Shown here one piece after another: positions 21,502-64,000 of a stretch of 64,000 nucleotides of DNA. Position numbers and translations under genes: made by a program. A model generated the notes under the pieces. It was given only the letters and a program-made list of their open reading frames with translations, had not been told where the DNA came from and ran no database searches. Each line of letters opens with the position of its first letter. The stretch's first letter is position 1. The stretch is from Lepidodermella squamata (Eukaryota > Animalia > Gastrotricha), in the NCBI GenBank assembly GCA_047495785.1, contig JBLDXI010000054.1, positions 4,237,812-4,301,811 of the forward strand. Reading direction: 5' to 3'.

Positions 21502-21576
21502 CTACCGTAGTTTTTCCGTAGCACTACGGTAAAACTACGGAAAAACTACGGTCAGTACTACGGTATGACTACGGTA
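21502..21576. repeat. Left terminal ACTACGG array (palindromic head plus 5 direct units)
   Basis: CCGTAGTTTTTCCGTAG-CA-CTACGGTAAAACTACGG; direct units at 21523, 21534, 21545, 21557, 21568. Confidence 0.9.
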
Positions 21577-22466
21577 AAATAATTTTTAGGAAAAAAAGAT
21601 TAAATCGCTTTGTAAAATGAAGGAAAACATTAGTTGTGTTTGATAAAATAGATTTGTTATCATGACCAACCATCAAAATCCATTTAGCAATAATCTGCAT
21701 GGGCTAAAAGCAATCAGAGACATAGATGAGGGCTTGCCCAGAGCCATCGCGGACATCGCGTTATAAAAGTGCCAAAGCTGCTCATATATGCAAAGAAGTC
21801 CTCGAAACACTTCCTGGCTAGGGGAGATACGTTGCTCTATCATATGTTCACAGTGCCAACACGGAGTCTCTATTTCTCGGCCTCGATAATCGCACGCAAA
21901 ACCGCCTGTAAACCTGGGCATTTTAACCGTTTTCGACGAATCACACCTGCTTACATAACGCAAGTGAGGCTTGTAACTTTTCAGTGGGATAAAAGAGGGT
22001 GTATTCTGTCAAGTTTTTGAGGTTCCAGTCAGCGTTCCTAATTCCTCGTCTTCGAATCTCGCTGCGCAACTACGGAACAGCGAGCCAGTAGTTAAGGAGC
22101 GAAACTCGGAAATCTCAATTTAAACTGCCGCGTGGAATAATTTTTAAACATCAAAATATATATTCCGATGAATAAATAAAACAGCTATGTGGTGAATTTT
22201 CAAATTTAAATTTTTTATTAAACAACCTTCAACATCTGCATACCCGCGCAACGCCAAGCTAGTGGTTGCCGGCGGCGAGCTCGGCACCCACTACTTCGTT
22301 TTTTACTTTCAACTTGAAAACTACTGTTAATACTGTTGCTATAACGATCCTTCTTTGAGTCGATTGGTGCTTGTTTGTTTGGCTAGCAATCATTCAAGCA
22401 CCTAGCAAGCATCTTTAGGTGTTGGTCATAGAGAGTATTGTAAATGTCATTTCTAGGTATTATCTA

Positions 22467-26377: not shown

Positions 26378-26460
26378 CTACGGTAGAAAAACTACTGCAA
26401 TTACGACTACGGAAAAACTACGGAAAAACTACGGCAATAACTACGGTAGAACTACGGTAG
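26378..26460. repeat. Right terminal ACTACGG array
   Basis: Units at 26406, 26417, 26428, 26440, 26451 plus degenerate copies upstream. Confidence 0.9.
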
Positions 26461-50818: not shown

Positions 50819-50886
50819 TTGGGTTGGGTTAGGGTTAGGGTTAGGGTTAGGGTTAGGGTTAGGGTTAGGGTTAGGGTTAGGGTTAG
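50819..50886 (+). repeat. Interstitial telomeric tract 1: (TTGGG)2(TTAGGG)9TTAG
   Basis: Directly visible; G-rich strand on + indicates the chromosome end lies to the right. Confidence 0.97.
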
Positions 50887-51319
50887 TTTCTTATTGAATA
50901 CCAGACGGGTCAATTATGAAATACCCCGGCAGAATTGGTCCTGGCCACAAAGACATGACCTTTGCCGGTTAAAATAATTAGGTTTAACGTGATCATTTTG
51001 TTTGATCGATTAAAACCCGTGGTGATAATTACCCATAGCCAATAGACTTGTTCACTGAGTGACTCAGTTACCCACTGTCATTGGATACGTTCATTATCAA
51101 GGCAGAGGTGAGTCTCCACCAGAAGTAGGACAATTACTCACAATCCTTGACTTGTTCACCACCCGGAGGCAGTTACCCACTATCTTGGATGTTTTCATCG
51201 TCACTAGACCGATACCCATCTTTGAATAAGTTGAGTAAAAGAGACGAAGAACTATAGAGGTTTGCCAATAATCAGACCGGTTTCGCTACTTGGCTAAGGT
51301 AGCTCATCAGTGATTTTGG
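50887..51319 (-). mobile_element. Remnant of a different hammerhead-bearing telomeric retroelement between two telomeric tracts
   Basis: 433-bp segment with a hammerhead at its distal edge and an internal imperfect direct repeat (GACTTGTTCAC...CAGTTACCCACT). Confidence 0.6.
51265..51319 (-). ncRNA. Type I hammerhead ribozyme
   Basis: Minus strand: AATCA-CTGATGA-GCTAC-cttagccaa-GTAGC-GAAA-CCGGTC-TGATT. Stem I, core, 5-bp stem II, short palindromic stem III, GUC cleavage site. Confidence 0.88.
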
Positions 51320-51433
51320 GGGTTAGGGTTAGGGTTAGGGTTAGGGTTAGGGTTAGGGTTAGGGTTAGGGTTAGGGTTAGGGCTAGGGTTAGGGTTAGGG
51401 TTAGGGTTAGGGTTAGGGTTAGGGTTAGGGTTA
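51320..51433 (+). repeat. Interstitial telomeric tract 2: 18 hexamers (one CTAGGG variant at 51383)
   Basis: Directly visible; its last 10 nt are shared with the retroelement terminus. Confidence 0.97.
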
Positions 51434-52398
51434 ATTAGTAAGCTGCGGTCCGCCTGTATTTTGTTTTGCGCAAGGTGATAAGTAAAAGCCTGCCAGCCCT
51501 TCGTAACGTTGGTGAGCAAGTCAGGGCTGAGCATGGCGCGTTTCATTTCGTTGCAGGCGCATTGAAATTGTTCGTAGATCGCCGGCCAGTAGATGTTGCT
51601 CGACTTGCGCAGGACTCGTAGCACGCTGTTGCTGCTCGCGACAGTGTTGAAGACCCGCGACGTTTGGGCCGCTCTGTCCGACGGATGGCAGTAGTTTGCT
51701 GCTTGGCGTGCATCGGTGAACGCACTTTCGAGAGCTTGCTCGTGTCCTTGCATGGATTTATGACGTATCTCGGAAACAACATTGTAAAAAAGCAAATCAA
51801 CGATGCCCTGAGTGCTAGCTTCGAACCGGTGCTCGCGCGGGAAAAACTTCTCAAGCACTGGCCGGAGTGCCTTCTCGTGAGCGGTGGTGGGTCTCTCGTT
51901 TTGAGGTTTGGCGTAGTCTTCACTGAAGTTGGCTGTGGCGAGCTTGGCTAAAATGAAGAAATGATGAATAAAATTGTTGAGTTTCTCGCGGAAGCGATCG
52001 AGGAGATCTTGTCGATGTTCCCTCGCTCGACGTTGCCCTTCTGCTGCTGCCTTAGAAGGTAGCTGCCTGTAGTCCGTTGAGTCTTGCGGTCGCTTCGTAC
52101 CATCCGCGTGCCGACGGTCTGACTGAGCGTTCGAACCGTGCGAGCGACTGGAGCGGCCGTGCGTAGCACCCTCGTGCGAACGGTAAGATCGAGTGTTCGA
52201 ACTGGACGCTGCTGCGGAGACTGTCTGTTTCGAGCGGCTTTGATGACGATCGCGCCGTTCTTGTTGATAGGGCGGATTGTGACGACTCGAATTGTAATAG
52301 ACGTAGCGGAAGCGGCCAAAGATGGCCCGTCCCGGGCGGTCGTTGTTAATTTCTGTAAACCCGTTGTTATTAGAAACAAAACGGTTACGGTTAGACAT
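51431..52398 (-). pseudogene. 3'-truncated ORF1 copy (pseudo-LTR-like) running into telomeric repeats
   Basis: Matches the ORF1 N-terminus up to LLINPN (one visible L/R difference). The NP dipeptide run is translated CCCTAA. Confidence 0.85.
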
Positions 52399-52407
52399 AA
52401 TGAGATT

Positions 52408-52446
52408 TATTGGTAGACCGGTTTCACTATTTCTTCAGTACCAATA
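52408..52446 (-). ncRNA. Minimal type I hammerhead ribozyme (copy 1)
   Basis: Minus strand TATTGGTA-CTGAAGA-AATAGT-GAAA-CCGGTC-TACCAATA; 8-bp stem I. Confidence 0.85.
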
Positions 52447-53176: not shown

Positions 53177-55003
53177 CTAGCAGTCTTTCGTTCGGCAGAG
53201 TTGCTTGACAACGCTTGGACCGAGTCGGGTGACGAGACGAATGCGTCGCCGGCGTGCGATGTCGTACAGTGGCTGTAGTGGCCGAACGAACTTCGTTTCG
53301 ACCGGTGGTCGCCAATCTTGTTGGTAGCGAAAGTTGTCGACTCGATTGCGTAGGAACGGCCAGTCTTGACCTTCGCAACTTGTGATGACGTCGTGGGCGA
53401 GCGCAAAAACATCTGCGTCGACGTAGCCGTACTTGGACGCGGAACTGGCGAGGCTAAAAATGGCAGAACACAAGTCTTCTGTATTATTGCAAATTCTTAA
53501 AAAGTTTAAAATGCGCCCTGTGACTGCGGCCCGGAGAGTCGATTCTGGGTGATTGGAGTCAGCGTGTAAGAGAGGCAACGAGTTCATGGGCTTGAAGTAA
53601 ACGCCGGTTCTGATGGAGCCATCGGGGTACTTGCTCAGGCGGACGTCGAGAACATTCGCACGCTCGGAGCTGATCTCGACTTCGAGCTTTATACGTGGAT
53701 GTAGTGCGCCGTATTCGTTGCCTAGCGTGACTGCGGCCTCTTGAGTGGTGCAGATTGCGAAGACGTCGTCTCGATACCGTTTGAACAACATCACGTCGGT
53801 TTGGCGTTCGACCAGATCGCGCTCGAGCACATAGAGGAACGCGTCCGCTACGACTGGGGCACTGTTGGAGCCCATCGGAATTCCGTGCACCTGACGATAC
53901 TGAATGCCTGAAAAATAGAAAATGTTTGAATTAAGTGTTATTTCGAGCATTGCGACGACGAGGTCGCGTTCGGGTGCGGTTCCGATTGCGTTCTCGTCCA
54001 ACATGGTCTTGATCGCTGCGATTCCTTCTCCAATCGGTACGTTGGTGTACAAGTCGCTCACGTCTGCGGTAAAGAACGTGACGTCGCACCCGCTTGAGTC
54101 GATTGCGCGAACAGCGTGTAGTAGGTCGATGGTAGACGAGGCACAGGTAGTCATGAACCGGTTGAGCGGTTTGCAGTAAGCTGCGGCGACCTTGTCTGCG
54201 GCGGCGAGAGCTGTGCCCAAACAGTCGACAATCGGGCGAATTTTCGGTAGACCATCTACGTCAAATGCCTTGTGCATTTTTGGTAAAAAATAAATATGAC
54301 GATCGCGGGTTGGCTCGAGATCGAGCCCGCGTAACAGCTTGCGTTGTGCGGCTGTACCGGTCGCCATAATGCGATCGACGAGAGTCTTCATTGCTTCGAG
54401 GCCTCGCTTCTCTTCTGATTCTTCGGCGTGCACATAGTTCGCTGTAGTGAGATGTTTGAGCGCCATTTTCGAGTAGTTCGCCTTTGACATGTAGACCATC
54501 GCTGCACCTTTGTCAGATTTCTTGAATACGCCGTCTTTGCGGAGGGCGCGTAATCGTCGTAGCTGTGGGTCGTCGACGATGGGACCGAGCCGTACTGTGC
54601 GAGCTGGCTGTGCGTGGCGGATAACGACTTGTCCGTGGATCCCGATAATCGGACCAACGAAGCGCTTTGAGAACGCTACAGAGGGAACCTTGACGTCGAG
54701 GCCGTGGTCGGGACGAGGGACGACGGTTGCGCCAAGGAGATCTGAAATGACATTAACACAGGCAATTTTATCTTTTTTCGTGAAATTAATGATTTTAAGG
54801 CCACGCTCGAGTGCCTGTTTCTCGGCTGGCTGGAGAGTTCCCGTCAGGTCAACGACGGACGGTAGAGAACAGCGATGCAGCGTCCCGTACGCTCCGTTTT
54901 GGACTAGGGATGGGATGGCCCTGAGCCCGAGCGATCCCGCGAAACCGCGACGCGATGTCTGCGTGTCTGTCTCCTTTTTCGTGCTTCTCGCGGATGTGTG
55001 TGA
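53177..55003 (-). CDS. Penelope-like reverse transcriptase (no endonuclease). Frame open from 55003; first ATG only at 54499
   Basis: VVDLTGTLQPAEKQALERGLK, KSDKGAAMV, YFLPKMHK, RPIV, TADVSDLYTNVP, QVHGIPMGS, RYRDD, LDVRL, YFKP..LHADSNHP. Ends after the thumb region. Confidence 0.93.
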   Translation of the reverse strand, partial: SHTSARSTKKETDTQTSRRGFAGSLGLRAIPSLVQNGAYGTLHRCSLPSVVDLTGTLQPAEKQALERGLKIINFTKKDKIACVNVISDLLGATVVPRPDHGLDVKVPSVAFSKRFVGPIIGIHGQVVIRHAQPARTVRLGPIVDDPQLRRLRALRKDGVFKKSDKGAAMVYMSKANYSKMALKHLTTANYVHAEESEEKRGLEAMKTLVDRIMATGTAAQRKLLRGLDLEPTRDRHIYFLPKMHKAFDVDGLPKIRPIVDCLGTALAAADKVAAAYCKPLNRFMTTCASSTIDLLHAVRAIDSSGCDVTFFTADVSDLYTNVPIGEGIAAIKTMLDENAIGTAPERDLVVAMLEITLNSNIFYFSGIQYRQVHGIPMGSNSAPVVADAFLYVLERDLVERQTDVMLFKRYRDDVFAICTTQEAAVTLGNEYGALHPRIKLEVEISSERANVLDVRLSKYPDGSIRTGVYFKPMNSLPLLHADSNHPESTLRAAVTGRILNFLRICNNTEDLCSAIFSLASSASKYGYVDADVFALAHDVITSCEGQDWPFLRNRVDNFRYQQDWRPPVETKFVRPLQPLYDIARRRRIRLVTRLGPSVVKQLCRTKDC

Positions 55004-57266
55004 TCAGACCATTGATTGAGCAGCTCTTGCCGACGTGGCCGCATCGTTTGCCGCTCGGTAGCTTGAAAGCGCACGACCACTTGCCGTTGTGAAACTCGAC
55101 GAGTATCGACGGATCGCGTATCTTTTCTTTCTTCCACCATTCGCGGGTGAACTCTGCTTTGCTCAAGTTCTTCTGTATGGCGTAGTCTTGCTTTGATAGC
55201 GTGGTCGTCGTATCACCCTGCTCTTGACGGACCGACTGAGCGTTCGAACCGTGCATCGGTGGGTTGTGCGCAGGCGGTCGCGATGCCGGTGCCAGGCGTT
55301 TGAGACACGTTCCGGGTTGCCCGTACATTTGTTGCGCCGAGATCGCTTTGACGACGGCGGGCTTCTTGGACGGCGCCGGAAGTTCTGTTGGTGACTTGTC
55401 TTTCGGGCTGGTGGCACGAGCTCGCTTGGTGGGCACCGAGGCGTTTGGCGCACCTGGTCGCGGAGCGTTCTGCGAGACCGCGTTGATCGCTTCACCGAAG
55501 AACGAGGCGACCGAGCTGACATCTGAAATAGAATTGCAATTATTAAAACGAGATTCGACATTGGCTGCAGCTGCTGCTAGCGCGGTGTCGCTGGCACTGT
55601 CGATCGGTGAAGCGTCCTTGCTCGGAGTCTGAGGCAGAGGCGCGGACGTGGGCGTTAACTGGGCTGCTGTCGATTTGTCGGCAGTGACCGTTTGTGGAGT
55701 AGCCGGGCGGGCTACATTGATAGTCGTTGAGAGGTCGGCGGTCGCCGCTGAATCGCGGCTGCCACCGTTCTTAGTAACCAAGTTGCTAGCTTCAGAAGTT
55801 GACCGAGCGGTAGTCGACGCTGAACCGCGACTGTCAACGCTCTTTGAGACCAAGTTGCTAGCTTCAGAAGTTGACCGAGCGGTAGTCGACGCTGAACCGC
55901 GACTGTCATCGCTCTTTGAGACCAAGTTGCTAGCTTCAGAAGTTGACCGTGCGGGAATCGAGGCCAAATCGCGACCGAGACCTCTCTTCGGTACCAGTGC
56001 GTTGATCTGAGCGGTTGAACGTGCGGAAATCCAGGTCGAATCGCGTTCTTCTGTGGTGAGCAAGCCCCAATCACCCGGGCTCGGATGGCCAGTCTGAGCG
56101 GTTGAACCGGGAGCCGCCTTGGGTGTCGGTGGTAACGCTTGACGAGCTGTTTCTGATTGACCTGTCGGCGTAACCGGATTGACGGCCGGGTCGCTTACGA
56201 CCATCGGCGACGAAGACTGAATGGTGTCGTGCGCTTCAACCGTTACGTTGACAGGTGCTTCCCTTGGGGAGGCATGGACCTGAGAAAGAGAGTTAGGGTT
56301 AATTAGTAAGCTGCGGTCCGCCTGTATTTTGTTTTGCGCAAGGTGATAAGTAAAAGCCTGCCAGCCCTTCGTAACGTTGGTGAGCAAGTCAGGGCTGCGC
56401 ATGGCGCGTTTCATTTCGTTGCAGGCGCATTGAAATTGTTCGTAGATCGCCGGCCAGTAGATGTTGCTCGACTTGCGCAGGACTCGTAGCACGCTGTTGC
56501 TGCTCGCGACAGTGTTGAAGACCCGCGACGTTTGGGCCGCTCTGTCCGACGGATGGCAGTAGTTTGCTGCTTGGCGTGCATCGGTGAACGCACTTTCGAG
56601 AGCTTGCTCGTGTCCTTGCATGGATTTATGACGTATCTCGGAAACAACATTGTAAAAAAGCAAATCAACGATGCCCTGAGTGCTAGCTTCGAACCGGTGC
56701 TCGCGCGGGAAAAACTTCTCAAGCACTGGCCGGAGTGCCTTCTCGTGAGCGGTGGTGGGTCTCTCGTTTTGAGGTTTGGCGTAGTCTTCACTGAAGTTGG
56801 CTGTGGCGAGCTTGGCTAAAATGAAGAAATGATGAATAAAATTGTTGAGTTTCTCGCGGAAGCGATCGAGGAGATCTTGTCGATGTTCCCTCGCTCGACG
56901 TTGCCCTTCTGCTGCTGCCTTAGAAGGTAGCTGCCTGTAGTCCGTTGAGTCTTGCGGTCGCTTCGTACCATCCGCGTGCCGACGGTCTGACTGAGCGTTC
57001 GAACCGTGCGAGCGACTGGAGCGGCCGTGCGTAGCACCCTCGTGCGAACGGTAAGATCGAGTGTTCGAACTGGACGCTGCTGCGGAGACTGTCTGTTTCG
57101 AGCGGCTTTGATGACGATCGCGCCGTTCTTGTTGATAGGGCGGATTGTGACGACTCGAATTGTAATAGACGTAGCGGAAGCGGCCAAAGATGGCCCGTCC
57201 CGGGCGGTCGTTGTTAATTTCTGTAAACCCGTTGTTATTAGAAACAAAACGGTTACGGTTAGACAT
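54849..57266 (-). CDS. PLE ORF1, 805 aa: R/S-rich N-terminus, helical core, S/T/P-rich linker, C-terminal BED-like zinc finger
   Basis: Uninterrupted ORF; WSCAFKLPSGKRCGHVGKSCSINGLITHIREKH. Confidence 0.85.
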   Translation of the reverse strand: MSNRNRFVSNNNGFTEINNDRPGRAIFGRFRYVYYNSSRHNPPYQQERRDRHQSRSKQTVSAAASSSNTRSYRSHEGATHGRSSRSHGSNAQSDRRHADGTKRPQDSTDYRQLPSKAAAEGQRRAREHRQDLLDRFREKLNNFIHHFFILAKLATANFSEDYAKPQNERPTTAHEKALRPVLEKFFPREHRFEASTQGIVDLLFYNVVSEIRHKSMQGHEQALESAFTDARQAANYCHPSDRAAQTSRVFNTVASSNSVLRVLRKSSNIYWPAIYEQFQCACNEMKRAMRSPDLLTNVTKGWQAFTYHLAQNKIQADRSLLINPNSLSQVHASPREAPVNVTVEAHDTIQSSSPMVVSDPAVNPVTPTGQSETARQALPPTPKAAPGSTAQTGHPSPGDWGLLTTEERDSTWISARSTAQINALVPKRGLGRDLASIPARSTSEASNLVSKSDDSRGSASTTARSTSEASNLVSKSVDSRGSASTTARSTSEASNLVTKNGGSRDSAATADLSTTINVARPATPQTVTADKSTAAQLTPTSAPLPQTPSKDASPIDSASDTALAAAAANVESRFNNCNSISDVSSVASFFGEAINAVSQNAPRPGAPNASVPTKRARATSPKDKSPTELPAPSKKPAVVKAISAQQMYGQPGTCLKRLAPASRPPAHNPPMHGSNAQSVRQEQGDTTTTLSKQDYAIQKNLSKAEFTREWWKKEKIRDPSILVEFHNGKWSCAFKLPSGKRCGHVGKSCSINGLITHIREKHEKGDRHADIASRFRGIARAQGHPIPSPKRSVRDAASLFSTVRR
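55735..55950 (-). repeat. 72-bp (24-aa) in-frame tandem repeat, about 3 copies, in ORF1
   Basis: RSTSEASNLVSKS.DSRGSASTTA; anchor ACCAAGTTGCTAGC at 55777, 55849, 55921. Confidence 0.9.
56292..56301 (-). other. Internal telomere-complementary 10-mer TAACCCTAAC (priming / template-like site)
   Basis: Equivalent position minus 4868 is 51424-51433, exactly where the proximal copy fuses to (TTAGGG)n. Confidence 0.85.
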
Positions 57267-57275
57267 AATGAGATT

Positions 57276-57314
57276 TATTGGTAGACCGGTTTCACTATTT
57301 CTTCAGTACCAATA
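57276..57314 (-). ncRNA. Minimal type I hammerhead ribozyme (copy 2)
   Basis: Identical to 52408-52446. Confidence 0.85.
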
Positions 57315-58044
57315 TCATACTTCTGATAGAATTATAACGAGTGACATTATTGTGACAGCGCTATGATAACACCGTACCAGGTGCGTGTGCCTCGGACTAT
57401 GTTAGGCGCAGCGGATTAGGATTACAAGGTGTTGTTTCGCGCACACGTGTTACTAAGTTCAAGTTAACTACGGCAGGTGTGCGTCTAGGTGTGCGCACTA
57501 TAGCGGATTTAGCGCACAGATGTTGTGGCCACTACTTGTTAATCGGTGATTCTAGCCAGATGGGTAACAAGGTGTGCTACTAGGCTGGCGAGGCCTTGAT
57601 GACGAGCTAACGTGACATCTGTGCTGTTGAGAGACGACAATTACAATGATGAAGATGACCAATAGAAGATTGACAGCTGACGCAAGGCGTTATTGCCGGC
57701 GACATCAAGGTATTGAAAGCAATAAAAGTCATAAAACAGGATATGCCGATTCTAAGGTCGTTATCGACTTTGGATCTCGCTGCGGGTTACTGGTTGATAC
57801 CAGGATGGCTTGGCCGCCGTGGTCGTGTGCGACTATGACTCGCTGACGTCCAGAACATTAGACCTCGCTGCGGGTTACTGGCCGATACCGCGTTGAACAG
57901 GCTATAAAACATGAATGGAGAAACATATAATACTGCGTAATGGTGGTAATTAATCTAATGAATTAATTAAGAATAATTAATAAACGGTCGGTAGCTTTGT
58001 TGCTACTCTTGACATCGTCGCTGGCTACTGGTCGATTGGTTCGG

Positions 58045-59289
58045 CTAGCAGTCTTTCGTTCGGCAGAGTTGCTTGACAACGCTTGGACCGAGTCGGGTGA
58101 CGAGACGAATGCGTCGCCGGCGTGCGATGTCGTACAGTGGCTGTAGTGGCCGAACGAACTTCGTTTCGACCGGTGGTCGCCAATCTTGTTGGTAGCGAAA
58201 GTTGTCGACTCGATTGCGTAGGAACGGCCAGTCTTGACCTTCGCAACTTGTGATGACGTCGTGGGCGAGCGCAAAAACATCTGCGTCGACGTAGCCGTAC
58301 TTGGACGCGGAACTGGCGAGGCTAAAAATGGCAGAACACAAGTCTTCTGTATTATTGCAAATTCTTAAAAAGTTTAAAATGCGCCCTGTGACTGCGGCCC
58401 GGAGAGTCGATTCTGGGTGATTGGAGTCAGCGTGTAAGAGAGGCAACGAGTTCATGGGCTTGAAGTAAACGCCGGTTCTGATGGAGCCATCGGGGTACTT
58501 GCTCAGGCGGACGTCGAGAACATTCGCACGCTCGGAGCTGATCTCGACTTCGAGCTTTATACGTGGATGTAGTGCGCCGTATTCGTTGCCTAGCGTGACT
58601 GCGGCCTCTTGAGTGGTGCAGATTGCGAAGACGTCGTCTCGATACCGTTTGAACAACATCACGTCGGTTTGGCGTTCGACCAGATCGCGCTCGAGCACAT
58701 AGAGGAACGCGTCCGCTACGACTGGGGCACTGTTGGAGCCCATCGGAATTCCGTGCACCTGACGATACTGAATGCCTGAAAAATAGAAAATGTTTGAATT
58801 AAGTGTTATTTCGAGCATTGCGACGACGAGGTCGCGTTCGGGTGCGGTTCCGATTGCGTTCTCGTCCAACATGGTCTTGATCGCTGCGATTCCTTCTCCA
58901 ATCGGTACGTTGGTGTACAAGTCGCTCACGTCTGCGGTAAAGAACGTGACGTCGCACCCGCTTGAGTCGATTGCGCGAACAGCGTGTAGTAGGTCGATGG
59001 TAGACGAGGCACAGGTAGTCATGAACCGGTTGAGCGGTTTGCAGTAAGCTGCGGCGACCTTGTCTGCGGCGGCGAGAGCTGTGCCCAAACAGTCGACAAT
59101 CGGGCGAATTTTCGGTAGACCATCTACGTCAAATGCCTTGTGCATTTTTGGTAAAAAATAAATATGACGATCGCGGGTTGGCTCGAGATCGAGCCCGCGT
59201 AACAGCTTGCGTTGTGCGGCTGTACCGGTCGCCATAATGCGATCGACGAGAGTCTTCATTGCTTCGAGGCCTCGCTTCTCTTCTGATTC
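58045..59289 (-). pseudogene. 5'-truncated second RT copy
   Basis: Same RT translation, cut at the inversion junction downstream of the DKG motif. Confidence 0.85.
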
Positions 59290-62200
59290 CTCGACGTCAA
59301 GGTTCCCTCTGTAGCGTTCTCAAAGCGCTTCGTTGGTCCGATTATCGGGATCCACGGACAAGTCGTTATCCGCCACGCACAGCCAGCTCGCACAGTACGG
59401 CTCGGTCCCATCGTCGACGACCCACAGCTACGACGATTACGCGCCCTCCGCAAAGACGGCGTATTCAAGAAATCTGACAAAGGTGCAGCGATGGTCTACA
59501 TGTCAAAGGCGAACTACTCGAAAATGGCGCTCAAACATCTCACTACAGCGAACTATGTGCACGCCGAAGAATCAGAAGAGAAGCGAGGCCTCGAAGCAAT
59601 GAAGACTCTCGTCGATCGCATTATGGCGACCGGTACAGCCGCACAACGCAAGCTGTTACGCGGGCTCGATCTCGAGCCAACCCGCGATCGTCATATTTTA
59701 TTTTTTACCAAAAATGCACAAGGCATTTGACGTAGATGGTCTACCGAAAATTCGCCCGATTGTCGACTGTTTGGGCACAGCTCTCGCCGCCGCAGACAAG
59801 GTCGCCGCAGCTTACTGCAAACCGCTCAACCGGTTCATGACTACCTGTGCCTCGTCTACCATCGACCTACTACACGCTGTTCGCGCAATCGACTCAAGCG
59901 GGTGCGACGTCACGTTCTTTACCGCAGACGTGAGCGACTTGTACACCAACGTACCGATTGGAGAAGGAATCGCAGCGATCAAGACCATGTTGGACGAGAA
60001 CGCAATCGGAACCACACCCGAACGCGACCTCGTCGTCGCAATGCTCGAAATAACACTTAATTCAAACATTTTCTATTTTTCAGGCATTCAGTATCGTCAG
60101 GTGCACGGAATTCCGATGGGCTCCAACAGTGCCCCAGTCGTAGCGGACGCGTTCCTCTATGTGCTCGAGCGCGATCTGGTCGAACGCCAAACCGACGTGA
60201 TGTTGTTCAAACGGTATCGAGACGACGTCTTCGCAATCTGCACCACTCAAGAGGCCGCAGTCACGCTAGGCAACGAATACGGCGCACTACATCCACGTAT
60301 AAAGCTCGAAGTCGAGATCAGCTCCGAGCGTGCGAATGTTCTCGACGTCCGCCTGAGCAAGTACCCCGATGGCTCCATCAGAACCGGCGTTTACTTCAAG
60401 CCCATGAACTCGTTGCCTCTCTTACACGCTGACTCCAATCACCCAGAATCGACTCTCCGGGCCGCAGTCACAGGGCGCATTTTAAACTTTTTAAGAATTT
60501 GCAATAATACAGAAGACTTGTGTTCTGCCATTTTTAGCCTCGCCAGTTCCGCGTCCAAGTACGGCTACGTCGACGCAGATGTTTTTGCGCTCGCCCACGA
60601 CGTCATCACAAGTTGCGAAGGTCAAGACTGGCCGTTCCTACGCAATCGAGTCGACAACTTTCGCTACCAACAAGATTGGCGACCACCGGTCGAAACGAAG
60701 TTCGTTCGGCCACTACAGCCACTGTACGACATCGCACGCCGGCGACGCATTCGTCTCGTCACCCGACTCGGTCCAAGCGTTGTCAAGCAACTCTGCCGAA
60801 CGAAAGACTGCTAGCCGAACCAATCGACCAGTAGCCAGCGACGATGTCAAGAGTAGCAACAAAGCTACCGACCGTTTATTAATTATTCTTAATTAATTCA
60901 TTAGATTAATTACCACCATTACGCAGTATTATATGTTTCTCCATTCATGTTTTATAGCCTGTTCAACGCGGTATCGGCCAGTAACCCGCAGCGAGGTCTA
61001 ATGTTCTGGACGTCAGCGAGTCATAGTCGCACACGACCACGGCGGCCAAGCCATCCTGGTATCAACCAGTAACCCGCAGCGAGATCCAAAGTCGATAACG
61101 ACCTTAGAATCGGCATATCCTGTTTTATGACTTTTATTGCTTTCAATACCTTGATGTCGCCGGCAATAACGCCTTGCGTCAGCTGTCAATCTTCTATTGG
61201 TCATCTTCATCATTGTAATTGTCGTCTCTCAACAGCACAGATGTCACGTTAGCTCGTCATCAAGGCCTCGCCAGCCTAGTAGCACACCTTGTTACCCATC
61301 TGGCTAGAATCACCGATTAACAAGTAGTGGCCACAACATCTGTGCGCTAAATCCGCTATAGTGCGCACACCTAGACGCACACCTGCCGTAGTTAACTTGA
61401 ACTTAGTAACACGTGTGCGCGAAACAACACCTTGTAATCCTAATCCGCTGCGCCTAACATAGTCCGAGGCACACGCACCTGGTACGGTGTTATCATAGCG
61501 CTGTCACAATAATGTCACTCGTTATAATTCTATCAGAAGTATGATATTGGTACTGAAGAAATAGTGAAACCGGTCTACCAATAAATCTCATTATGTCTAA
61601 CCGTAACCGTTTTGTTTCTAATAACAACGGGTTTACAGAAATTAACAACGACCGCCCGGGACGGGCCATCTTTGGCCGCTTCCGCTACGTCTATTACAAT
61701 TCGAGTCGTCACAATCCGCCCTATCAACAAGAACGGCGCGATCGTCATCAAAGCCGCTCGAAACAGACAGTCTCCGCAGCAGCGTCCAGTTCGAACACTC
61801 GATCTTACCGTTCGCACGAGGGTGCTACGCACGGCCGCTCCAGTCGCTCGCACGGTTCGAACGCTCAGTCAGACCGTCGGCACGCGGATGGTACGAAGCG
61901 ACCGCAAGACTCAACGGACTACAGGCAGCTACCTTCTAAGGCAGCAGCAGAAGGGCAACGTCGAGCGAGGGAACATCGACAAGATCTCCTCGATCGCTTC
62001 CGCGAGAAACTCAACAATTTTATTCATCATTTCTTCATTTTAGCCAAGCTCGCCACAGCCAACTTCAGTGAAGACTACGCCAAACCTCAAAACGAGAGAC
62101 CCACCACCGCTCACGAGAAGGCACTCCGGCCAGTGCTTGAGAAGTTTTTCCCGCGCGAGCACCGGTTCGAAGCTAGCACTCAGGGCATCGTTGATTTGCT

Positions 62201-63983
62201 TTTTTACAATGTTGTTTCCGAGATACGTCATAAATCCATGCAAGGACACGAGCAAGCTCTCGAAAGTGCGTTCACCGATGCACGCCAAGCAGCAAACTAC
62301 TGCCATCCGTCGGACAGAGCGGCCCAAACGTCGCGGGTCTTCAACACTGTCGCGAGCAGCAACAGCGTGCTACGAGTCCTGCGCAAGTCGAGCAACATCT
62401 ACTGGCCGGCGATCTACGAACAATTTCAATGCGCCTGCAACGAAATGAAACGCGCCATGCGCAGCCCTGACTTGCTCACCAACGTTACGAAGGGCTGGCA
62501 GGCTTTTACTTATCACCTTGCGCAAAACAAAATACAGGCGGACCGCAGCTTACTAATTAACCCTAACTCTCTTTCTCAGGTCCATGCCTCCCCAAGGGAA
62601 GCACCTGTCAACGTAACGGTTGAAGCGCACGACACCATTCAGTCTTCGTCGCCGATGGTCGTAAGCGACCCGGCCGTCAATCCGGTTACGCCGACAGGTC
62701 AATCAGAAACAGCTCGTCAAGCGTTACCACCGACACCCAAGGCGGCTCCCGGTTCAACCGCTCAGACTGGCCATCCGAGCCCGGGTGATTGGGGCTTGCT
62801 CACCACAGAAGAACGCGATTCGACCTGGATTTCCGCACGTTCAACCGCTCAGATCAACGCACTGGTACCGAAGAGAGGTCTCGGTCGCGATTTGGCCTCG
62901 ATTCCCGCACGGTCAACTTCTGAAGCTAGCAACTTGGTCTCAAAGAGCGATGACAGTCGCGGTTCAGCGTCGACTACCGCTCGGTCAACTTCTGAAGCTA
63001 GCAACTTGGTCTCAAAGAGCGTTGACAGTCGCGGTTCAGCGTCGACTACCGCTTCGGTCAACTTCTGAAGCTAGCAACTTGGTTACTAAGAACGGTGGCA
63101 GCCGCGATTCAGCGGCGACCGCCGACCTCTCAACGACTATCAATGTAGCCCGCCCGGCTACTCCACAAACGGTCACTGCCGACAAATCGACAGCAGCCCA
63201 GTTAACGCCCACGTCCGCGCCTCTGCCTCAGACTCCGAGCAAGGACGCTTCACCGATCGACAGTGCCAGCGACACCGCGCTAGCAGCAGCTGCAGCCAAT
63301 GTCGAATCTCGTTTTAATAATTGCAATTCTATTTCAGATGTCAGCTCGGTCGCCTCGTTCTTCGGTGAAGCGATCAACGCGGTCTCGCAGAACGCTCCGC
63401 GACCAGGTGCGCCAAACGCCTCGGTGCCCCACCAAGCGAGCTCGTGCCACCAGCCCGAAAGACAAGTCACCAACAGAACTTCCGGCGCCGTCCAAGAAGC
63501 CCGCCGTCGTCAAAGCGATCTCGGCGCAACAAATGTACGGGCAACCCGGAACGTGTCTCAAACGCCTGGCACCGGCATCGCGACCGCCTGCGCACAACCC
63601 ACCGATGCACGGTTCGAACGCTCAGTCGGTCCGTCAAGAGCAGGGTGATACGACGACCACGCTATCAAAGCAAGACTACGCCATACAGAAGAACTTGAGC
63701 AAAGCAGAGTTCACCCGCGAATGGTGGAAGAAAGAAAAGATACGCGATCCGTCGATACTCGTCGAGTTTCACAACGGCAAGTGGTCGTGCGCTTTCAAGC
63801 TACCGAGCGGCAAACGATGCGGCCACGTCGGCAAGAGCTGCTCAATCAATGGTCTGATCACACACATCCGCGAGAAGCACGAAAAAGGAGACAGACACGC
63901 AGACATCGCGTCGCGGTTTCGCGGGATCGCTCGGGCTCAGGGCCATCCCATCCCTAGTCCAAAACGGAGCGTACGGGACGCTG
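59290..63983 (+). mobile_element. Inverted copy of the same PLE (RT 59290-60814, hammerhead, ORF1 from 61593) with three 1-bp insertions
   Basis: 59569-63983 is the reverse complement of 54878-59289, with extra bases near 59697, 63053 and 63428. Confidence 0.8.
61545..61583 (+). ncRNA. Minimal type I hammerhead ribozyme (copy 3)
   Basis: TATTGGTACTGAAGAAATAGTGAAACCGGTCTACCAATA; predicted cleavage after C61575. Confidence 0.85.
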
Positions 63984-64000
63984 ACTCTCACGAGATGTGT
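63984..64000 (-). other. Probable untrimmed PacBio barcoded-adapter sequence (technical artefact)
   Basis: ACTCTCACGAGATGTGT is the reverse complement of ACACATCTCGTGAGAGT, recalled from memory as barcode bc1003 plus T overhang. It breaks homology with the element abruptly at the window end. Confidence 0.8.

Follow-up and report, generated by a model that had tools for sequence, protein, structure and literature searches.

Endonuclease-lacking Penelope-like elements (PLEs) are described as attaching to the G-rich overhangs of chromosome ends through reverse-complement telomeric repeats, according to the accounts given in two sources (PMC8557442, PMC6431247). Among them are the Athena elements and Terminons of bdelloid rotifers (Gladyshev & Arkhipova 2007; Arkhipova et al. 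2017), which are considered here as summarized in PMC8557442 and PMC6431247. So far, such attachment by base pairing has been inferred from non-coding 3′ repeats located by a hammerhead motif. In addition, the reverse transcriptase (RT) of a Penelope element uses multi-copy, unprocessed RNA, on which it initiates internally, at 111-118 nt into the ORF and thus past the hammerhead (PMC11167929). The element reported below is best explained by combining the model for endonuclease-lacking PLEs with the internal initiation of the lizard Penelope element.

The window, that is, the whole 64-kb stretch of DNA that was analyzed, carries an endonuclease-lacking PLE whose 4868-bp unit consists of a hammerhead-like motif, ORF1, an RT gene, and a 730-nt spacer without a long ORF. 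The main parts of the full unit are these:

57276-57314, minus strand: hammerhead-like motif, whose end lies 10 nt before the ORF1 ATG
54849-57266, minus strand: full ORF1, 805 aa
56292-56301, minus strand: telomere-pairing 10-mer TAACCCTAAC, 1.67 C-strand telomere repeats, in the codon phase xxT AAC CCT AAC
53177-54898, minus strand: RT ORF, 573 codons open, with no GIY-YIG endonuclease domain

Several lines of evidence place the RT among those of PLEs. A Pfam scan of the window RT (E ≤ 0.1) returned only RVT_1, with values of 2.9e-6 to 5e-6 that lie below the gathering score. The scan gave no match to a GIY-YIG endonuclease in this protein; a distant relative (P0021) does match. The nearest Atlas clusters (score 0.98) combine the domains DUF8422, HTH_animal, and RVT_1, and the family alignment retains KKADKG and YRDD, which together form the PLE-type pattern of DKG/DKN, YxDD, and DUF8422/HTH_animal with RVT_1. 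Seventeen close relatives were found, relatives carry PF28514 and PF26215, and farther matches include a GIY-YIG-bearing Penelope-type protein. An exact look-up showed the window RT itself to be absent from the contig index. The Atlas neighbors are rotifer-rich clusters, which is a lead only toward the Athena clade. The absence of an endonuclease is as in Athena/Coprina-type PLEs, and the tandem organization, in which the 5′ part of the ORF supplies a 3′ “tail,” is that of PLEs in general.

The RT frame overlaps the end of ORF1 with a +1/-2 offset and remains open upstream of 54898, to at least 55000, with its first ATG at 54499. At the position where the relatives start, the window frame has CTC and no ATG, so that the window copies may or may not produce RT. 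The ORF1 protein begins with a disordered N-terminus, which is followed by a helical domain at residues ~116-318 and a linker with an NPN motif. Its C-terminal part comprises a low-complexity region with 72-bp repeats (55741-55975) and then a Cys/His-rich C-terminus. A fold search of the helical domain against the PDB gave no significant match, and a profile search of prokaryotic genome contigs with the N-domain found no relatives.

Like the PLEs described before, this element has a hammerhead upstream of the ORF, although in a variant form that is a predicted ribozyme. The order of its parts is helix I (8 bp), CUGAAGA, a 6-nt linker replacing stem II, GAAA, CCGG, UC, and helix I′. We identified this stem-II-less motif by a manual pattern and a covariation count; an Rfam scan of the window element and of relatives L001-L005 returned no hammerhead match. 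Helix I is 94% paired over 10 aligned elements (L010 left out), with compensatory changes in all eight of its pairs. A linker of 4-6 nt takes the place of stem II in 10 of the 11 family members, and L010 keeps a 4-bp stem II.

The 10-mer itself reads TAACCCTAAC on the minus strand and GTTAGGGTTA on the plus strand. A preliminary description of this DNA had placed it inside ORF1 and had it encode INPN, and this is indeed the case, with I-N-P-N being residues 322-325 of the 805-aa product. In the predicted structure these residues fall in a low-confidence linker directly after the confidently folded helical domain. The exact 10-mer occurs 27 times in the window, compared to 0.06 expected; 24 of these occurrences fall within two telomere tracts, and the remaining three, at 56292, at 62558, and at the 51424 junction, belong to copies of a single element. 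The site is predicted to be unpaired at 0.85 versus 0.69 with shuffled flanks, and for the window element's own copy the accessibility of 0.77 versus 0.69 is weak and not distinctive. A second telomere-like site, the near-match TAACCGTAAC at the start of ORF1, was also considered and was set aside, being not conserved at the nucleotide level in relatives.

Conservation was assessed with 10 related elements from metagenomes, whose RTs are 35-62% identical and whose contigs are circularly permuted units. Nine of them carry the identical 10-mer, with the same codon phase, at the homologous position in ORF1, and the tenth (L006) has one substitution. The 10-mer is duplicated in L003 and L008 and extended in L004. 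Column conservation is 0.99 within the 10-mer versus 0.47 and 0.55 in the flanks. All four of its third-codon positions are invariant, and the flanks are saturated. The amino acid before N-P-N varies (I, V, F, C, N, S, T, P), but the third base of its codon does not. Given the amino acids, the observed codon choice has a probability of 0.012-0.056 per element. Mainly on the basis of this conservation across related elements, the alignments confirm that the 10-mer is beyond what chance would be expected to produce, and they show it to be under nucleotide-level selection throughout the family. A single 10-mer frozen at synonymous sites in a gene, among elements whose RTs are only 35-60% identical, is unusually clean comparative evidence for selection of the pairing site at the level of nucleic acid.

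It might be argued instead that the 10-mer is kept for the protein, as an N-P-N linker, or as a splice signal formed by CTAAC and an acceptor, and that its place at the telomere junction is incidental. N-P-N is invariant in eight aligned ORF1 N-domains, with N-P-T in L006, and a pyrimidine-rich stretch and AG follow the 10-mer in most members. The branch-point-like context pointed out in the preliminary description is present, in that CTAAC is followed on the minus strand by TCTCTTTCTCAG. However, we found no strong splice donor (GTRAGW) between the ribozyme-like motif and the 10-mer in the window element, and none is conserved among the relatives, which speaks against a role in splicing. Neither a protein nor a splice function would account for the invariant synonymous positions, including the third base of the variable preceding codon. 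Moreover, the element meets telomere repeats at the 10-mer in two data sets, and the contigs of two relatives either end there (L006) or continue from it into telomere-like repeats (L004). We therefore consider this explanation very unlikely.

The junction with the telomere lies at the proximal end of a subtelomeric tandem array, with which the window ends and the parts of which are as follows:

50821-50886, plus strand: telomere tract TTGGGTTGGG(TTAGGG)~10, older and chromosome-proximal, which follows directly on unique DNA
50887-51319, minus strand: 433-bp fragment that separates the two telomere tracts and derives from a different hammerhead-bearing element
51320-51433, plus strand: (GGGTTA)19 tract, including a single GGGCTA variant, to which the array is attached
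51434-52398, minus strand: “tail” of the proximal copy, which comprises the initial 965 nt of ORF1 up to the 10-mer, with one substitution relative to the full copy
52408-52446, minus strand: hammerhead-like motif of the proximal unit, identical to that at 57276-57314
58045-59297, minus strand: distal RT copy, 5′-truncated at ~59291-59297
59289-64000, plus strand: inverted (head-to-head) copy that runs to the window end, with its 10-mer at 62558-62567

The proximal (terminal) copy matches the full copy as far as 51421-51433, where, at 975 nt into ORF1, it ends and gives way to telomere repeats. The last 10 nt of the tract (51424-51433) are common to the telomere and to the element's 10-mer. 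Because the homology is 10/10, or 12/13 when extended, the switch point can be placed only to within the 10-mer. Tandem Repeats Finder (TRF) reports 19.0 GGGTTA units at 51320-51433, which correspond to the 10 nt of the 10-mer plus ~17.3 hexamers, so that the earlier reading of a proximal copy that ends at the 10-mer and continues as 18 hexamers is right in substance and approximately right in number. In the tail, the open frame continues into the telomere repeats, where it encodes (NP)n, and reaches a stop at 51307. Relative to the TTAGGG strand the element is antisense, and it is found distal to the repeat tract; its sense strand is the C-strand, with the 3′ side toward the chromosome. This position and polarity are those of Athena/Coprina-type PLEs, and a reverse-complement telomeric stretch, TAACCCTAAC, stands at the attaching end.

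The fragment between the two tracts carries a minimal Penelope-type hammerhead at 51314->51271. Although its Rfam match is weak (HH9, 13 bits), direct reading of the sequence reveals helices I and II as well as the complete core CUGAUGA / GAAA / CCGG / UC. The sense 3′ end of this fragment, ...GAAACTAAC, joins (CCCTAA)n. At the other end of the array, three 1-nt insertions and one or two substitutions distinguish the inverted copy from the direct one, and the inverted copy may be a fold-back assembly artifact.

The junction was also sought in an independent sequencing run (X1), for which 25 differences from the window are listed across ~4.4 kb. In this run, GTTAGGGTTAGGGTTAGG is joined to 56292-56321 in a contig of 48 nt (depth 65.5), a second contig of 402 nt (depth 47.3) passes through the 10-mer, and the main 4388-nt contig breaks exactly at 56292. 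Another contig goes back 4868, the same tandem period as in the window. No other telomere-type loose ends were present in the X1 contigs over 5.9 kb, although rare variants are dropped from Logan contigs and scattered minor junctions may thus have been missed. The window shows only one junction, and that in X1 may have been inherited from the same insertion instead of having arisen independently. No X1 contig bridges the joint of the inverted copy, which proves nothing, given that most of 58425-59400 is without depth in this run.

These data bear on the proposal that the joint was produced by chromosome healing, in which telomerase adds repeats at a telomere-like seed, or by misassembly. Telomere-like seeds favor de novo telomere addition, and the distal inverted copy, as a possible assembly artifact, lends some weight to the second version. 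However, we reject healing of a broken end because of the orientation, since it is on the centromere side of the joint that the repeats are found, with their G-strand running into the element. An artifact is contradicted by the presence of the same joint in contigs of the independent run. Taken together, these two versions have hardly any probability.

We conclude that the 3′ G-overhang probably pairs with the 10-mer, as a site internal to the element's RNA, and thereby primes cDNA synthesis. This had been claimed in the preliminary description, and the orientation, the junction in two data sets, and the conservation all support it. Priming by the overhang is not a new mechanism but the published model for endonuclease-lacking PLEs. 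In the sequence of events that we envisage, a transcript longer than one unit, made from a tandem array as in other PLEs, would expose the C/A-rich UAACCCUAAC. A telomere that is short or uncapped would then pair, through its single-stranded TTAGGG overhang, with the 10-mer over 10 nt (12/13 when extended), and the element's RT would extend the chromosomal 3′ end by copying the RNA from the internal 10-mer toward the RNA 5′ end. Because copying would start at the internal 10-mer, the new DNA would begin with the 965-nt ORF1 tail, and this would be followed by the ribozyme-like motif and spacer, the RT gene, and a full ORF1. A partial tandem would thus be recreated that could again give rise to read-through transcripts. 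This scheme presumes that the template is RNA rather than DNA, that the RT itself carries out the priming, and that initiation is internal on a longer RNA and not at an RNA 3′ end made at the 10-mer, each of which we infer.

The structure of the array is relevant to the nature of the template. It comprises 1.6 units with a 4868-bp period and no telomere repeats between units, and it therefore needs a 7.9-kb read-through RNA, template switching, or copying at the DNA level. One could imagine that the 10-mer is the attachment point in a DNA-templated event, wherein an eroded 3′ end invades the 10-nt microhomology in the array of another chromosome end and break-induced replication proceeds outward. 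Such an event would give an identical-looking junction, and wholesale DNA copying fits both the lack of internal repeats and the finding that the array copies differ by only 1 substitution in 3 kb. However, it leaves unexplained why synonymous positions are invariant down to 35% RT identity, unless the elements are selected for the 10-mer anyway. In addition, relatives of the family RT are documented to prime on telomeric overhangs (PMC8557442). The depth in run X1 is greater at the joint (65.5) than for read-through (47.3), which points to numerous short terminal additions and not to one long array that has spread. Thus, we judge break-induced replication to be unlikely, if still deserving of consideration, and retain priming of cDNA synthesis by the overhang.

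A more elaborate use of the 10-mer was also suggested in the preliminary description, namely that the RT copies UAACCCUAAC reiteratively and so adds TTAGGG repeats in the manner of telomerase before reading through. One or more repeats would be added by slippage or translocation. In vertebrate telomerase RNA templates, alignment and template regions together span ~1.67 repeats, which is the size of the 10-mer. The duplicated 10-mers of L003 and L008 and the extended one of L004 might be viewed in the same light, and the RTs of PLEs are the sister group of TERT (PMC8557442). Nevertheless, the 114-bp tract by the joint contains no variant repeats derived from the flanks of the 10-mer (e.g., TTAATT), and we see no evident template-boundary structure. 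A Pfam scan (E ≤ 0.1) of the RT ORF detected neither a telomerase RNA-binding (TRBD) nor a TEN-like domain. A pre-existing telomere fully and most simply explains the tract. The suggestion thus finds no support here, and we consider it very improbable. If it were true, an mRNA would double as a primitive telomerase RNA, and the element would be a living intermediate between retroelements and telomerase.

Some resemblance to the telomerase RNA template exists regardless, in that a C-strand stretch of ~1.7 repeats would pair with the G-overhang and be copied by a TERT-related RT. The differences are that the element gives no evidence of repeated copying, a template boundary, or TEN/TRBD domains, and that its RT would read on into the rest of the RNA. 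The ten bases involved represent a well-defined substrate for the choice of start point by such an enzyme. An animal with TTAGGG telomeres harbors elements of this kind, as do many environmental samples. A search of metagenome contigs with the RT alignment recovered only distant PLEs (22-31% identity), which serve as an outgroup. C-strand repeats were found at 14 of 80 distant metagenomic PLE loci, and all 14 are in sense orientation.

Another endonuclease-lacking PLE at TTAGGG ends, Coprina-1_Alen of Ascochyta lentis, shares with the window element the telomere repeats between element and chromosome, the two ORFs, and flanking direct repeats (PMC13159263). Its host is a fungus, whereas that of the window element is apparently an animal. 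As judged from the published description, telomere repeats flank whole Coprina elements, and no pairing site internal to ORF1 is described (PMC13159263).

With Athena, as portrayed in PMC8557442 and PMC6431247, the window element has in common the lack of an endonuclease, the location at chromosome ends, and a sense strand that is the C-strand. The same accounts give Athena two ORFs, with ORF1 in a different frame from RT, head-to-tail arrays, and a hammerhead-type motif that precedes a short reverse-complement telomeric stretch for pairing with the G-overhang, all of which have counterparts here. However, the pairing stretch of Athena is reported there as non-coding and immediately downstream of the hammerhead, whereas that of the window element is a single 10-mer in the coding sequence of ORF1, 983 nt downstream of the predicted ribozyme cleavage site (0.8-1.7 kb in relatives). 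The repeat type also differs, being TTAGGG rather than the rotifer repeat, and the lack of stem II in 10 of 11 family members is unlike the Athena hammerhead as presented in these sources. The likeness to Athena is one of layout. Compared to the described elements, the window element differs in having its pairing site within coding sequence, ~1 kb downstream of the ribozyme.

The PAc (Poseidon) element of Anolis carolinensis is the counterpart for internal initiation (PMC11167929). Both elements have a tandem organization, and the multi-copy RNA that templates PAc, which is not cleaved at the hammerhead, is the kind of template that we propose for the window element. In PAc, synthesis starts downstream of the hammerhead, at an A/C-rich site in the 5′ part of the ORF, and leaves a genomic tail (PMC11167929), as it appears to do here. 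The tail is ~110 nt in PAc and 965 nt of ORF1 in the window element. PAc has a GIY-YIG endonuclease and a start site lacking homology to its target, whereas the window element has no endonuclease and a site complementary to the telomere overhang (PMC11167929). Thus, this family would link the telomere-pairing model to the internal start of Penelope RT on unprocessed multi-copy RNA, with the internal start site in this case being defined by its complementarity to the target.

The 10-mer at 56292-56301 reads GTTAGGGTTA on the plus strand and TAACCCTAAC on the minus strand, which is the sense strand of the telomere-attached retroelement arrayed near the end of the window. As the preliminary description had stated, this motif lies within ORF1 (54849-57266, minus; 805 aa) and codes for I-N-P-N. 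Exact matches to the 10-mer number 27 in the whole window, compared to 0.06 expected. All factual parts of the preliminary description hold, and the observation is real and well beyond chance. Two telomere tracts hold 24 of these occurrences, and the other three fall one each in the three element copies.

Telomere tracts in the window
50821-50886, plus: TTGGGTTGGG(TTAGGG)n
51320-51433, plus: (GGGTTA)19

Self-comparison of the window reveals a tandem period of 4868 bp, with the features ordered as follows.

Array features in the order of the sense strand (leftward on the window)
minus: RT copy, 5′-truncated at about 59291-59297
minus: spacer between the truncated RT copy and the hammerhead-like motif
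57314 to 57276, minus: hammerhead-like motif
57266 to 54849, minus: ORF1, 805 aa
54898 to 53177, minus: RT, 573-codon open frame, overlapping the ORF1 end in a different frame
minus: spacer between RT and the second hammerhead-like motif
52446 to 52408, minus: second hammerhead-like motif
52398 to 51434, minus: initial 965 nt of ORF1
minus: telomere motif, then (CCCTAA)n

The proximal copy matches the full copy as far as 51421-51433 and continues as telomere repeats, so self-comparison agrees with the earlier claim that this copy ends at the motif, and the count of 18 hexamers given there is approximately right. Read 5′ to 3′, TTAGGG points toward increasing coordinates, and the unique genes are on its left; this places the chromosome end at the right and the element antisense to the G-strand, distal to the repeats. 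This is the polarity expected for a chromosomal 3′ end extended on element RNA. Healing of a break was considered and rejected, given that its polarity is opposite to that observed at the element-telomere joint. In the terminal copy (51307-52398, minus), the truncated ORF1 frame runs open through the telomere repeats and would encode the helical N-domain plus an (NP)n tail.

A single substitution over 3 kb separates the two direct copies, and ORF1 of the full direct copy is open. The RT open frame spans 573 codons and carries CTC at the position of its relatives’ ATG. Entry into RT from ORF1 requires a +1/-2 frame change in the overlap region (54849-54931, minus), and RT expression may need frameshifting or another unconventional start. 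An inverted head-to-head copy (59289-64000, plus) extends to the window end, meets the 5′-truncated direct copy at 59289-59297, and differs from the direct copies by three single-base insertions (about 59699, 63054, and 63430). No contig bridging this joint was seen in X1, an independent public sequencing run in which most of the stretch had no depth. The inverted copy is possibly a fold-back assembly artefact at the contig end or a real palindrome, and it was not used as a basis for conclusions. The low-complexity middle of ORF1 contains 72-bp (24-aa) tandem repeats (3.3 copies, 89% identity; 55741-55975, minus, and 62884-63119, plus). Elsewhere in the window, in its gene-bearing part, the 11-bp unit ACTACGG(A/T)AAA forms short arrays about 5 kb apart (21523-21579 and 26386-26457).

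The element is present in a single public run, X1 (0.83 of sampled words). Because 25 listed places carry other letters over about 4.4 kb, X1 is not the assembly’s own data. Its contigs were compared over 53500-59400, a span exceeding one complete unit. The 4388-nt unit contig has its start exactly at 56292 and wraps around by 4868 nt. In another contig, of 48 nt and depth 65.5, GTTAGGGTTAGGGTTAGG is joined to 56292-56321; a third, 402 nt long at depth 47.3, continues through the motif. No other telomere-type loose ends were seen across the unit in these contigs, which hide rare variants. Thus, the same joint exists in independent data and is the sole joint seen, representing either many joints or one and the same inherited joint. 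The same joint would also be expected from the main rival to RNA-templated attachment, namely DNA-templated, microhomology-primed break-induced replication from another array, which likewise fits a 1.6-unit, near-identical array. However, this process alone leaves the conservation of the motif across the family unexplained, and we regard it as improbable.

This conservation is evident in ten contigs carrying RT relatives of the element (L001-L010), all of which have the layout ORF1-RT-spacer-ORF1, with several being circularly permuted units. Nine of the ten have exact TAACCCTAAC on the sense strand, located in ORF1 where the alignable N-terminal domain ends, and in every one of these nine the phase is xxT AAC CCT AAC. 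The L006 motif is TAACCCTACC, and that contig ends in ...CCTAACCCTA; in L004, the motif is followed by CCCAACCCTAACCCTAACC and then the contig end. Motif-anchored column conservation is 0.99 in the motif versus 0.47 and 0.55 in the 36-nt flanks, and all four third-codon positions of the motif are invariant (flanks 0.49). The preceding codon specifies I, V, F, C, N, S, T, or P, yet its final base is always T. Given the amino acids and each ORF’s own codon usage, the motif’s codon choice has a probability of 0.012-0.056 per element; the product over nine elements, about 1e-14, exaggerates the significance, since these lineages are related to one another. These patterns mark the motif as a selected nucleic-acid signal.

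In an AlphaFold model, the ORF1 N-part begins with a disordered stretch, and residues 116-318 form an all-helical domain modeled with confidence, whose fold has no significant match in the PDB. NPN sits in a low-confidence linker directly after this domain, which in the model would be a site tolerant of nucleotide constraint. The predicted unpaired fraction of the motif RNA is 0.85 versus 0.69 with shuffled flanks (p=0.02), an effect that is weak for the window’s own copy. In the RT-ORF1 spacer of L004, a distant member of the family, there is a degenerate telomere-like tract about 200 nt upstream of the hammerhead-like motif (L004:2758-2791; CCCTACCTACACTAAACCTAACCATAACCCTAAC). This tract may represent either a second site of pairing or the remnant of a telomere between elements. 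The branch-point-like letters remarked on earlier are present at the motif, but a strong upstream splice donor is absent from the window’s element and none is conserved among relatives.

All 11 family members (the element and L001-L010) carry a hammerhead-like motif shortly upstream of the ORF1 ATG.

Hammerhead-like motif copies in the window
57276-57314, minus
52408-52446, minus
61545-61583, plus

Its layout is helix I, CUGA(A/U)GA, a 4-6 nt A/U-rich linker, GAAA, a palindrome (the stem III loop: CCGG, CUAG, or UCUAGA), U, H, and helix I′. An Rfam search (E<=1) gave no match in the element or L001-L005. Among ten aligned elements (L010 left out, its row being misaligned), helix I is 94% paired compared to 52% in shuffles and 37-46% when slid, with compensatory changes at all eight helix I pairs. 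The linker replaces stem II in 10 of the 11 members. The most distant, L010, keeps a normal 4-bp stem II, indicating that the motif derives from a Penelope-type hammerhead and has since lost stem II. The telomere motif lies 983 nt downstream of the predicted cleavage site (0.8-1.7 kb in relatives). The stem-II-less form may be a natural “minizyme”-type hammerhead, or a ribozyme relic retained as a protein-binding hairpin.

Seventeen close relatives of the RT ORF, at 35-62% identity, were found, each of them in a metagenome or a Logan assembly; one more distant match has a GIY-YIG domain. Precomputed Pfam families of the relatives are DUF8422, HTH_animal, and RVT_1, as in the nearest Atlas clusters, where rotifer proteins are abundant, and KKADKG and YRDD are kept in the family alignment. 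A Pfam scan of the RT ORF found neither an endonuclease nor a telomerase-specific domain. By these sequence criteria, the element is classified as an endonuclease-lacking Penelope-like element (PLE); its family appears in a TTAGGG animal and many environmental samples and was matched to no described element in this analysis. Telomerase-like reiteration of the motif, also raised in the preliminary description, gained no positive evidence: telomerase-specific domains are missing from the Pfam results, and the tract adjoining the joint has no flank-derived variant repeats. We consider it very unlikely.

Between both telomere tracts lies a 433-bp fragment (50887-51319, minus) whose sense 5′ end bears a complete minimal hammerhead of the Penelope type (51314 to 51271) and whose sense 3′ end is joined to (CCCTAA)n at ...GAAACTAAC. 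The fragment resembles the “tail” of another telomere-attaching element, unrelated to the first. Two successive additions, by different hammerhead-bearing elements, are therefore recorded at this chromosome end. A metagenome scan returned 80 PLEs, distant ones only, 14 with C-strand repeats, every time in sense orientation. In the nearest outgroup PLEs (27% identity), the RT open frame includes a (CCTAAC)4 stretch in its C-terminal end, and a normal hammerhead precedes ORF1.

(CCTAAC)4 stretches in the outgroup
L011:4092-4145
L012:3572-3625
L013:3838-3891

Such pairing stretches may therefore be commoner than described, and coding-embedded sites may be widespread.

In the mechanism we favor, and consider probable, the G-overhang would pair with the motif on a read-through transcript and be extended by the element’s RT. 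The priming originally proposed is thus the best interpretation, but the mechanism itself is already known, and the family fits both the published attachment model and internal initiation. In that model, as outlined in PMC8557442 and PMC6431247, endonuclease-lacking PLEs attach to exposed G-rich overhangs via reverse-complement telomeric stretches adjoining the hammerhead; the element’s proposed start site is similarly complementary to its target overhang. A purified Penelope RT was shown to initiate at an internal A/C-rich site, which lies 111-118 nt within the ORF and downstream of the hammerhead; its template is unprocessed multi-copy RNA, which accounts for the genomic “tail” (PMC11167929). 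The element’s start is likewise an A/C-rich 10-mer in ORF1 downstream of a hammerhead-like motif, and its “tail” is the 965-nt ORF1 N-domain region. Penelope hammerheads so far described have large stem II helices (PMC4209133). What is new here is the family itself, a hammerhead-like motif without stem II, and a pairing site formed by a single 10-mer, which lies about 1 kb from the ribozyme-like motif and is embedded and constrained in the coding sequence of ORF1.
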